From Schmidtea polychroa (lineage: Eukaryota), in assembly GCA_044892525.1 (NCBI GenBank), contig CM097888.1:93000001-93064000 (forward strand): a DNA stretch of 64,000 nucleotides, written 5' to 3'. How positions within the stretch are numbered: position 1 is the stretch's first letter; every line of letters starts with the position of its first letter. Under the pieces are notes generated by a model. It searched no databases. It saw nothing but the letters and a program-made list of their open reading frames with translations, and was not told the origin of the DNA. Below, piece after piece: positions 34,361-37,599 of this stretch. Position numbers and translations under genes: made by a program.

Positions 34361-35348
34361 TGTTTGTCAATAGACTCCTTGTTTTCGATAATCAAATGAA
34401 TACTCAAATCCCAACAAAATATTTATATCCAAATTGTCAAAATTCTTTACAAAGTCATAATAACTGTGTATTTTTTCTCTTCGACAAACTGGTGCTTTCT
34501 GTTTGGTGCTCTCTACTTATATAGTATTTTATTTCCCATTAATATTTCCCTCATCTTGAGTTTGTTGAAGAATTTATTGCCAATTATCCCAATTCCAGAC
34601 AAGTCATTCATCTGAAAATGAGCTAGGTATATTGAAGAGGTTTTTGCCCATTATCTTAATTTCCGGCAACCGATTGATCTAACACTTGACTGAATAGCTA
34701 TTGATAAATGGACTCACCTTAAGATCATTTAATTAATTTGTTTGTTTTTGGGCTCCTGAACTGCCTATAAATCTCTGATTAATTTTAAATAATTTTATGC
34801 GTTTTCAGAATCTCATTCTTCGCCGATTACCACTTTTCCATTTGAAAATATTGATTTTTACTCAGAGTGGAGCGGTCACGGGTACAGATCTTAATAGTAG
34901 TAGAAATTATTCAAGTGAGATCCTTGAAAACTGAAGTGAATAAGAGTTCTATGTGAACAGTAGATGTTCCGTACAAGAATTAATTTTTGTCATTAAAAAA
35001 TCATGGACCTCACAAGCGCCAATAGAACCTAATCACAACACGAACAGATTTAAAATACATCAAAGAGCGACGACGGTTAATTAATGGCAGAATTATGTCA
35101 TGAGAAGGGGCTTTTATATTGAATTAGAAACAAATTTTGAAATAGAAATCTCGCTTTTTGAATTTTGTTATGAATAAAATTATTCACTTAGTTGTTTAAA
35201 ATATTCATTAAACGTATAAAGCTAATATGCTATTAAAATGATGATAAATTAAAATAATTTATAACCTACAAAAAATAAATTTATGATTTTTGTTTAAATG
35301 TGATAATTATATCATTAATTAAAAAAAATCATTTCAAATTTATACACA

Positions 35349-35949
35349 ATGTCTGAAGGAAATACTTTAAAAGTTCATGTTGAATATTGGTATTAATTAG
35401 TAATGAGGAATATAATCATTATTAACTTGTTTATTAACCTTCAGTGGGGGATGAGGTTACGCCAGCCATTATGCGAGCTTGCGGAACGCCATCAATGCTC
35501 AAGTGCCAGGCATTGAATGGAGTTATGTCGTTGGTCGAACAAGTATATTTTATTATTGCATTGGTAATAATTGCTAAAATGGCGCCCTGTTTTGTGAGTA
35601 TGGTAAAATGTTTATCAATCAGTGAGGATTGATTGTAGTGGTCTGCAATGATTAGAATTATTAGGCTTGCTTCCAATAGCTGGATTGCGAATGCTATGGA
35701 AATATTTCCAATTTAATATTCTCTATTCTCTAGCTTCATTCGAGATCTCGGTCAATGACGTTCTCGTGTTCTCCAAGCTGAAATGTGGCGGATTTCCTGA
35801 CTATGATGACGTAAGCAGCTGCATTGTGAGATAATTATGCTTATTGCTGAGCGTTTCAGATCATCAAATTGCTGAATGCCGTCCTAGCCGGTGAGAAGCC
35901 ATATTTGATCACTAACTTCAAGCCGAATCCATCTTGCAATATTTTGTAA
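35349..35949 (+). CDS. MIEN1: Rdx-family selenoprotein, SELENOW2/MIEN1-like, 101 aa, Sec at residue 17
   Basis: Exons 35349-35389, 35445-35542, 35734-35810 and 35860-35949, with GT-AG introns of 55, 191 and 49 nt and consistent phases. Protein: MSEGNTLKVHVEYCGGUGYASHYASLRNAINAQVPGIEWSYVVGRTTSFEISVNDVLVFSKLKCGGFPDYDDIIKLLNAVLAGEKPYLITNFKPNPSCNIL. TGA at 35452-35454. VEYCxxU, FEI.VN..LVFSKL..GGFP and the C-terminal CaaX match the family as I recall it. Confidence 0.93.
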
Positions 35950-35960
35950 AGCTCGCTTCA

Positions 35961-36016
35961 GACCGCAATGAAGACGATCGATGACAGCTCTGCAGTCGAT
36001 TGTTGGATGCTTGGTC
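35961..36016 (+). promoter_or_regulatory. SECIS element candidate
   Basis: AUGAA core (35968-35972) and GGAU (36005-36008). 10-bp helix II GACGAUCGAU/GUCGAUUGUU, helix I GACC/GGUC, and an apical GA plus 2-bp ministem. Confidence 0.75.
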
Positions 36017-36087
36017 CCAGCTGGTGGGCATTTCACAACATTGCAGCACCATCACAACCTTTTATTGCAACTATTTCTGATGGTGTA

Positions 36088-36093
36088 AATAAA
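36088..36093 (+). terminator. Polyadenylation signal AATAAA of the selenoprotein gene
   Basis: First AATAAA after the stop and SECIS, followed by T-rich sequence. Confidence 0.55.
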
Positions 36094-37599
36094 TTTGTTT
36101 CTTACTTTCAATTGTTAATATTCTATTGATTTGTTATATTTTGTTATTATTGATAATTGAAATTGCGAGATAAATAATTCACCATTCGATTACGTTGTCA
36201 TGGTAACCGCTATTTAAACAAAAATAATTAGCTTTCGAAAATTGACAAATGAAATGGAAAAGTGGGAAATTCAATATAAATATATCTCAACAAAATCGTG
36301 CTCACATTCAAGAAATTGTTAGTAATGCAGTTTATGTAATTTTCATATGGTGAAATAGAATGATTTGTATTAATAATTTAATCTTATGCCTTCCTCTGTT
36401 TGTCAATTGGGCTCGTCACAACTGGGGAAACATTTAGAATAACAAGTATGTTGACTCGTAAATAGAAATTTTAAAAAATAACTTCGTAACCTGATAAATG
36501 CAAAGTTTCCTTGAGAAGGTCATCGAATTCAGATTAGTAGGGAATTAAAATCTAATTTTCATACGAGAAAATATTGTTGAATCCGGCAACGGAATTAGAA
36601 TATTAAATGGCGTGAAACACAGAACCACAAGAATTTTTAAATTAGAACTTCGAAATCGCTGAATAGAAAACAAAATAAGAGAAATTCCACAATTAAAACA
36701 AGGAAACTAACTTGAAAAATTTTAGAATTCTTTGAACCTTCTAGAATGGCATAATTTGTTTTATTACACTAAAAATTATAAACTAACAAATGTTTTGGTT
36801 TATTGGACTAGCATTTTCACATCAGAACAGTTCTCTCATTACACCCGAGTTAAAATTTCGAGTTAAAATTATTGAAAATTTTAATTAATTTTATCTATTT
36901 CAACCAATGAGAAGACAGCAAATGAATTTAAAAAAGAAAATGAAAAATCGTTTGAAGAAATTAACGAAGATTATTTGATAATTAAAATTTCATTCAATAT
37001 ATACTTTGCAGCGAAATAATTTACTTGTTTAACATTTAATTAATGCTGCTACCAAGAAATCATCATGTTATATTATAATTATAATTATTAAAATTCATTT
37101 ACACGCATGGCGGCACGGAGGGAATTTTATTTTAATGAACTGGTAATCCGGACAGACGGGAAAAACAGACCAACAAGCTCTTCTGCTTGCCTTTGATAAG
37201 TAATGTCCATATTTAATTTACATAATGTAAACTAACTCAAACAAATAACCAAATTTTAATCAAATAAATTTTATTTAATTCCCCATCCACCCAAAAAGAA
37301 AGCAACCAACATGTAGCCTACAGGATCCTTTAGAACATTGATTGGGAGTTATTATGCGAATGTTTATTATTTTACTTTACTTTATCTAATTTTTTTTATT
37401 TTTTTATCATATAATTCATAATAATTTTATTGTTATTTTTTAGAATTTATTAAGAAAATTTTATTTTTTAATGGATTTGCTTATAACAAAAGTAAAAAGA
37501 TTTTTTGTGTAATTATTTTAAAATATTCGGATGATCCCCTAACCACAATTTTATAACAATCCATCTAAAAAATAGAAGAATGTTAAGATCAAAATGTCA

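Follow-up and report, generated by a model that had tools for sequence, protein, structure and literature searches.

The 3' UTR of an expressed MIEN1-like gene in Schmidtea polychroa carries a hairpin that is very probably a real selenocysteine-insertion signal and that departs from known SECIS elements in its apical motif. The hairpin occupies positions 35961–36016 of the window (the whole stretch of DNA analysed, 64,000 nt, which includes 3107 N). It lies behind the stop codon of a gene with an in-frame UGA, has a standard core and stems, is present in spliced RNA-like contigs, is unique in the window, and has stems that covary with those of paralogous elements. On these grounds we regard the hairpin as probably the working SECIS of a MIEN1/SelW2-like gene, with an apex that is derived and shortened.

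Eukaryotic SECIS elements are defined by just two sequence motifs, one of them the apical AA, which classical search patterns hard-code; a selenoprotein gene whose sole possible SECIS lacks it is a natural test of how strict the requirement is. In the description of SECISearch3, the apical bases are mostly adenines and in a few cases cytosines (PMC3753652). The first-pass annotation took AA as the rule and CC as the known exception, in agreement with vertebrate SECIS elements, which have AA in almost all cases and CC in SelM and SelO (PMC3316567), and with the human TXNRD3 SECIS, which is of the CC type (PMC2761289). The AAA/G motif has been called essential for Sec insertion (PMC3706390, PMC2761289), and the role of the two apical bases is given as unknown in one account (PMC3316567). 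According to a 2024 review, eEFSec recognises the apical loop in structural data (PMC11431864). Our search of open-access text turned up neither a G-A nor an A-C apical form.

The host is a four-exon expressed gene whose product, by its translation, is a MIEN1/SelW2-like protein with an Rdx fold and a predicted Sec residue (Table 1). Spliced contigs from four sequencing runs in two studies connect the exons at GT..AG joints (35388/9>35444/5, 35542>35734 and 35810>35860), the first of which is seen in contigs X1, X2 and X3. On record, the RNA origin of these runs is no more than a guess; since their contigs are spliced, they are RNA-derived in practice. The coding frame comprises 101 codons from ATG 35349 to TAA 35947–49, with the CxxU motif CGGU at codons 14–17, and its last 60 residues align with the solved human C17orf37/MIEN1 structure (2LJK, E = 1.4e-7) as far as the Cys of the CaaX-like CNIL end. 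Contigs from runs of the two studies cover 35860–36056 or 36085 with 0 differences from the genome, and short contigs stop at 36108 and 36111, just beyond AATAAA at 36088; the 3' UTR is therefore about 160 nt long, and the hairpin lies inside it. The spliced contigs thus answer the concern, raised in the first-pass annotation, that the hairpin might fall outside the mature 3' UTR; together with the CGGUGY translation and the MIEN1 match, they assign it to a gene that is expressed and has its in-frame UGA within the CxxU redox motif.

Table 1. Features of the host gene and of the hairpin, in positions of the window.
Feature	Positions	Strand	Basis or remark
Exon 1	35327..35389	+	5' UTR and ATG 35349; ends with TG of the CxxU Cys codon
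Exon 2, with Sec codon	35445..35542	+	Joints in four runs; translation C-G-G-U-G-Y
In-frame TGA, codon 17, read as putative Sec in CGGUGY	35452..35454	+	Frame open 84 codons further
Exon 3, Rdx-fold core SFEISVNDVLVFSKLKCGGFPDYD	35734..35810	+	PF10262, 25.5 bits, above cut-off
Exon 4, CDS end and 3' UTR of ~160 nt	35860..36111	+	Contig cover; stop TAA 35947–49
SECIS hairpin, whole	35961..36016	+	Sequence, folding, motif scan, paralogue alignment
SECIS core 5' side, AUGAA (A-UGA-A)	35968..35972	+	Sequence; fits the UGAN consensus of PMC2647825
Helix II 5' strand	35973..35982	+	10/10 pairs, probability 0.93–0.999; covaries with paralogues
Apical region, 12 nt: G A [C A] G C U C [U G] C A	35983..35994	+	
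Helix II 3' strand	35995..36004	+	Folding and covariation
SECIS core 3' side, GGAU (G-GA-U)	36005..36008	+	Fits KGAW, consensus from PMC2647825
AATAAA polyadenylation signal	36088..36093	+	Transcripts end ~15–20 nt beyond

Two differences separate the contigs from the genome assembly. All four RNA-like runs have G at 35508 against a genomic A, a synonymous change (CCA>CCG, Pro35) and the only coding difference between RNA and genome, and in one X1 contig an extra ATATC follows 36087, right before AATAAA. Both are likely to be strain or allele variation. The protein ends in the CaaX-like CNIL, and such ends occur in all three MIEN1-like selenoproteins of the genome: CNIL in the window, CELL at L006:1700–1717 and CNVL at L029:3509–3523. 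Human MIEN1 carries a C-terminal CaaX prenylation box, CVIL, and the planarian termini suggest that the predicted proteins may be prenylated likewise.

Eleven nucleotides lie between the TAA stop and the hairpin, and 18 nt between the stop and its AUGA. Helix II consists of ten uninterrupted pairs (35973–35982 with 36004–35995), among them three G-U pairs (35973/36004, 35976/36001 and 35982/35995). Helix I is short and interrupted, with 2 bp (35965–66/36009–10), a UU bulge and 4 bp (35961–64/36013–16); it is weak yet present, and in the alignment with paralogues, columns 6–8/66–68 pair in a common register. In the apex, C35985-G35992 and A35986-U35991 form a ministem around a GCUC loop (35987–90), followed by C35993 and A35994. 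RNAfold gives the same hairpin for the isolated stretch and within the full spliced mRNA. When the 490-nt spliced mRNA is folded, the helix-II pairs reach probabilities of 0.93–0.999 and the ministem pairs 0.96 and 0.78, the lowest value belonging to the A-U pair. Stability by itself does not set the hairpin apart, since the 81-nt stretch has a minimum free energy (MFE) z-score of only -1.44; what is remarkable is that its motifs occur together in the correct register.

The structure described in the first-pass annotation (an AUGAA/GGAU quartet, a helix II of 10 bp that includes three G-U pairs, and a short helix I) matched base for base. So did the departure that it reported: the positions at which AA is expected, +12/+13 after UGA, hold G35983 and A35984, and a CA/UG ministem with a GCUC loop follows. 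Its label of 'GA' for the apical motif stands in part. G and A do occupy the AA positions, but positions +12 to +15 read G, A, C, A, and 'GA' is one of two readings, the alternative being a G followed by A-C-A.

Strict criteria (ATGA, KGAW and a helix II of 8 or more pairs in an unbroken run), applied to both strands of the 64-kb window, returned a single match, which is this hairpin. A relaxed, energy-based scan of the window returned five matches, with the hairpin the most stable among them, and in the 490-nt mRNA it contains the sole NUGA...GA pair that closes a stem. The element is single-copy in the genome. Among 20,000 dinucleotide shuffles of the 162-nt UTR, a helix II of 10 pairs arose in 0, of 9 pairs in 2 and of 8 pairs in 4. 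A better canonical SECIS further downstream, which the first-pass annotation had named as a competing outcome, was not found by the strict, relaxed and mRNA stem scans, either there or elsewhere in the mRNA or the window. Matches to the bare NTGA_AA/CC_GA pattern in the coding region were rejected because they close no stem.

Standard detectors pass over the hairpin, as had been anticipated for strict pattern searches. Classical SECISearch patterns specify NTGA, 10–13 nt, AA or CC, 15–39 nt and GA (Lobanov et al., PMC2375036); neither NTGA_AA_GA nor NTGA_CC_GA has a match in the UTR, in which no AA or CC stands 10–13 nt after NTGA. With RF00031, the hairpin gives no match at the gathering threshold (35 bits), nor at E ≤ 10, whether given 701 nt or 91 nt of sequence. 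The same model scores two paralogue elements at 27.9 bits (L006) and 24.4 bits, both under 35, and no SECIS of this genome reaches 35 bits, the best being at 27.9. It misses the SECIS elements of SelT, GPx and Sep15 (E ≤ 10, 26 kb; loci L001, L018 and L024) and one SelW1 SECIS, and a search of the whole 781-Mb genome yielded 0 matches at E ≤ 10, though it scored only 129 of 16,008 candidates and so says little. Its silence on the hairpin therefore carries little weight, and planarian SECIS annotation based on Rfam must be very incomplete, given that canonical SelT, GPx and Sep15 elements escape it. A covariance model built from six paralogue SECIS elements (R1) placed the hairpin second in the window, at 12.5 bits (E = 2.5), and we do not count this score in its favour.

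Eight other distinct SECIS elements were found behind selenoprotein exons of the same genome: three of SelW1, one each of SelT, GPx and Sep15, and two of MIEN1-like paralogues. All eight have AAA, AAAA or AAAG 12–14 nt after UGA, where the hairpin has G-A-C-A, so by parsimony the A-run is ancestral. In an alignment of five paralogous elements (the hairpin and four others), helix II is 94% paired and 7 of its 10 pairs have changed on both sides; 0 of 500 shuffles reached the observed values, and sliding the partners lowered pairing to 24–49%. At two helix-II positions the hairpin has C-G where the paralogues have U-A. Compensatory change has thus preserved the stems, whereas the A-run has disappeared. 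These values come from alignment A4; we dropped A1, in which MAFFT misaligned GPx and Sep15, and A5, in which the third MIEN1-like SECIS was misaligned. The examined flanks of four further GPx matches and of the SelK and SelS matches held no SECIS, and these loci were excluded as comparators; their 3' ends probably lie farther away. A homologous-protein search with the 60-residue C-terminus returned none in the 33–105 aa range.

The SECIS of the closest paralogue (L006:1750–1821, also L005) is homologous to the hairpin, with similar helix-II strands and two fully compensated pairs. In both, GAUGCU follows the core, GCAG precedes the 3' strand, and a small ministem carries a loop of 4 nt. The paralogue has CU-AAAA and a 3-bp ministem, and it is the element that RF00031 scores best, whereas the corresponding segment of the hairpin is 7 nt shorter and has no A-run.

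Set against type II SECIS elements in general (RF00031, SECIS_1; SelW, SelT, Sep15), the hairpin is the same in its 3' UTR location, A-UGA-N/K-GA-W core, G-Y first helix-II pair, 10-bp helix II, short helix I and small apical ministem. It differs in having G-A-C-A in place of an unpaired AA(R) 10–13 nt after the core, in an apex of only 12 nt with a 2-bp ministem, in a very small internal loop with AA on the 5' side only, in starting 11 nt from the stop, and in scoring under any reportable RF00031 value. The mammalian SELENOM, SELENOO and TXNRD3 elements likewise belong to real selenoprotein genes and have the apical AA replaced (PMC3316567, PMC2761289). They carry CC, a form that is conserved across mammals, whereas the hairpin has a purine, G, in first place or, if read the other way, a mixed A-C. 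The GGGA-core SECIS of SelT in Toxoplasma and Neospora likewise departs in nature from a supposedly conserved motif, and pattern searches missed it (PMC2647825, PMC11431864). There the core quartet is changed, whereas the hairpin has a perfect core and a changed apical motif.

If the hairpin is the working SECIS of this gene, its AUGA/GA kink-turn core would be predicted to bind SBP2, which would bring eEFSec with Sec-tRNA(Sec) to the ribosome, and the codon-17 UGA, 276 nt upstream of the core in the mRNA, would then be read as selenocysteine and not as a stop. The apex would be a derived one, the A-run having given way to G-A-C-A in a shortened loop on a standard core, helix II and helix I. 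Expression of the gene, the open frame after the UGA and the compensatory changes in helix II all point to a function in Sec insertion, and from them we infer SBP2 binding and Sec insertion without the canonical AA. The genome also has the Sec machinery in the form of tRNA-Sec genes, and canonical SECIS elements stand behind several of its other selenoprotein genes. The missing apical AA or CC, the lack of an RF00031 match and the R1 score of only 12.5 bits are points against this reading. More tentatively, and with some doubt, we suggest that the element may be a natural metazoan SECIS that is efficient without unpaired apical AA or CC; its 2x2 internal loop, G-A opposite C-A, may even stack in non-canonical pairs and so form a continuous stem with a GCUC tetraloop as its cap.

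The ministem may instead remain unformed, leaving the apex as a 12-nt type-I loop with a functional unpaired A35984-C35985-A35986 preceded by G. The motif would then be an intermediate between the AA and CC forms and not 'GA', an arrangement that we consider rather unlikely and that is compatible with a working SECIS. In SECISaln the apical position consists of consecutive As or Cs (PMC2647825), a relaxed pattern (NTGA, 10–13 nt, [AC][AC]) matches at 35968, and in other SECIS elements of this genome, too, one or two unpaired non-A bases come ahead of the As (U-AAA in that of Sep15, CU-AAAA in that of the closest paralogue). The A-U pair is the least probable of the ministem, yet RNAfold retains the ministem in both its MFE and centroid structures, and an A-C form, like a G-A form, did not turn up in our search of open-access text.

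A working SECIS, with either apex, has to be weighed against one in decay. Loss of the A-run could have crippled Sec insertion, as in a pseudogene or a switch from Sec to Cys under way, and the mRNA would then mostly give a 16-residue peptide. The ancestral state of the A-run, present in all eight other elements examined, would fit such a loss, as would the reported essential role of the apical motif (PMC3706390) and the existence of natural human SECIS elements that are very inefficient (PMC2761289). We nevertheless find decay improbable: the frame after the UGA is intact for 84 codons, with an Rdx core and a CaaX-like end, the sole coding difference is synonymous, helix II has acquired compensatory C-G pairs, and a spliced transcript was assembled in four runs despite a codon-17 stop upstream of two exon junctions. 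That the hairpin is a product of chance and the real SECIS lies elsewhere, for example in a longer 3' UTR isoform, is highly improbable, for although neither RF00031 nor model R1 singles out 35961–36016 and the MFE z-score is modest, the mRNA and the same strand of the window hold no other candidate, contigs end at the AATAAA site, the shuffle test puts such a helix at less than 1 in 5000, the stems covary with those of paralogues, and RF00031 is equally silent on the elements of SelT, GPx and Sep15 and on one of those of SelW1 in the same genome.

Were the hairpin confirmed as a SECIS that is efficient without unpaired apical AA or CC, the 'essential' AAR motif, which eEFSec reads according to the review (PMC11431864), would not be a universal requirement, and selenoproteome surveys that rely on patterns could be overlooking genes, in flatworms and in other invertebrates. 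A flatworm selenoproteome paper appeared in 2013 (PMC3828610). RF00031 and the AA/CC patterns under-call flatworm SECIS elements, and the close paralogue with a canonical AAAA apex in the same genome is a ready comparison partner. The scope is one gene in one species, of interest chiefly to specialists.

In this genome, genes for tRNA-Sec score up to 79 bits, and at least 13 RF01852 matches of 55–79 bits lie within ~0.8 Mb (G000:C1:13.65–14.43 Mb; L025–L028), three of the clustered copies being called tRNA-SeC(tca) by ARAGORN. Most animals have one or two tRNA-Sec copies. The SelT 3' end with its SECIS (GUGAU...AAA...GGAU) occurs in at least five near-identical copies, at L001 (G000:C1:110.07 Mb) and at L012, L013, L014 and L016 (G000:C4:87.8–92.7 Mb); L013 has no open SelT frame, and given this, some of the copies are probably pseudo-copies. 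The SelW1 cluster shows a mirrored duplication, in which paired SECIS elements of identical sequence lie about 10 kb from each other on opposite strands (L003/L004 and L008/L009, G000:C1:12.28–12.30 Mb; L010, C1:12.266 Mb). The closest MIEN1-like paralogue occurs twice with identical sequence, at L005 (G000:C3:95.27 Mb) and L006 (G000:C229), and G000:C229 is probably an uncollapsed haplotig.
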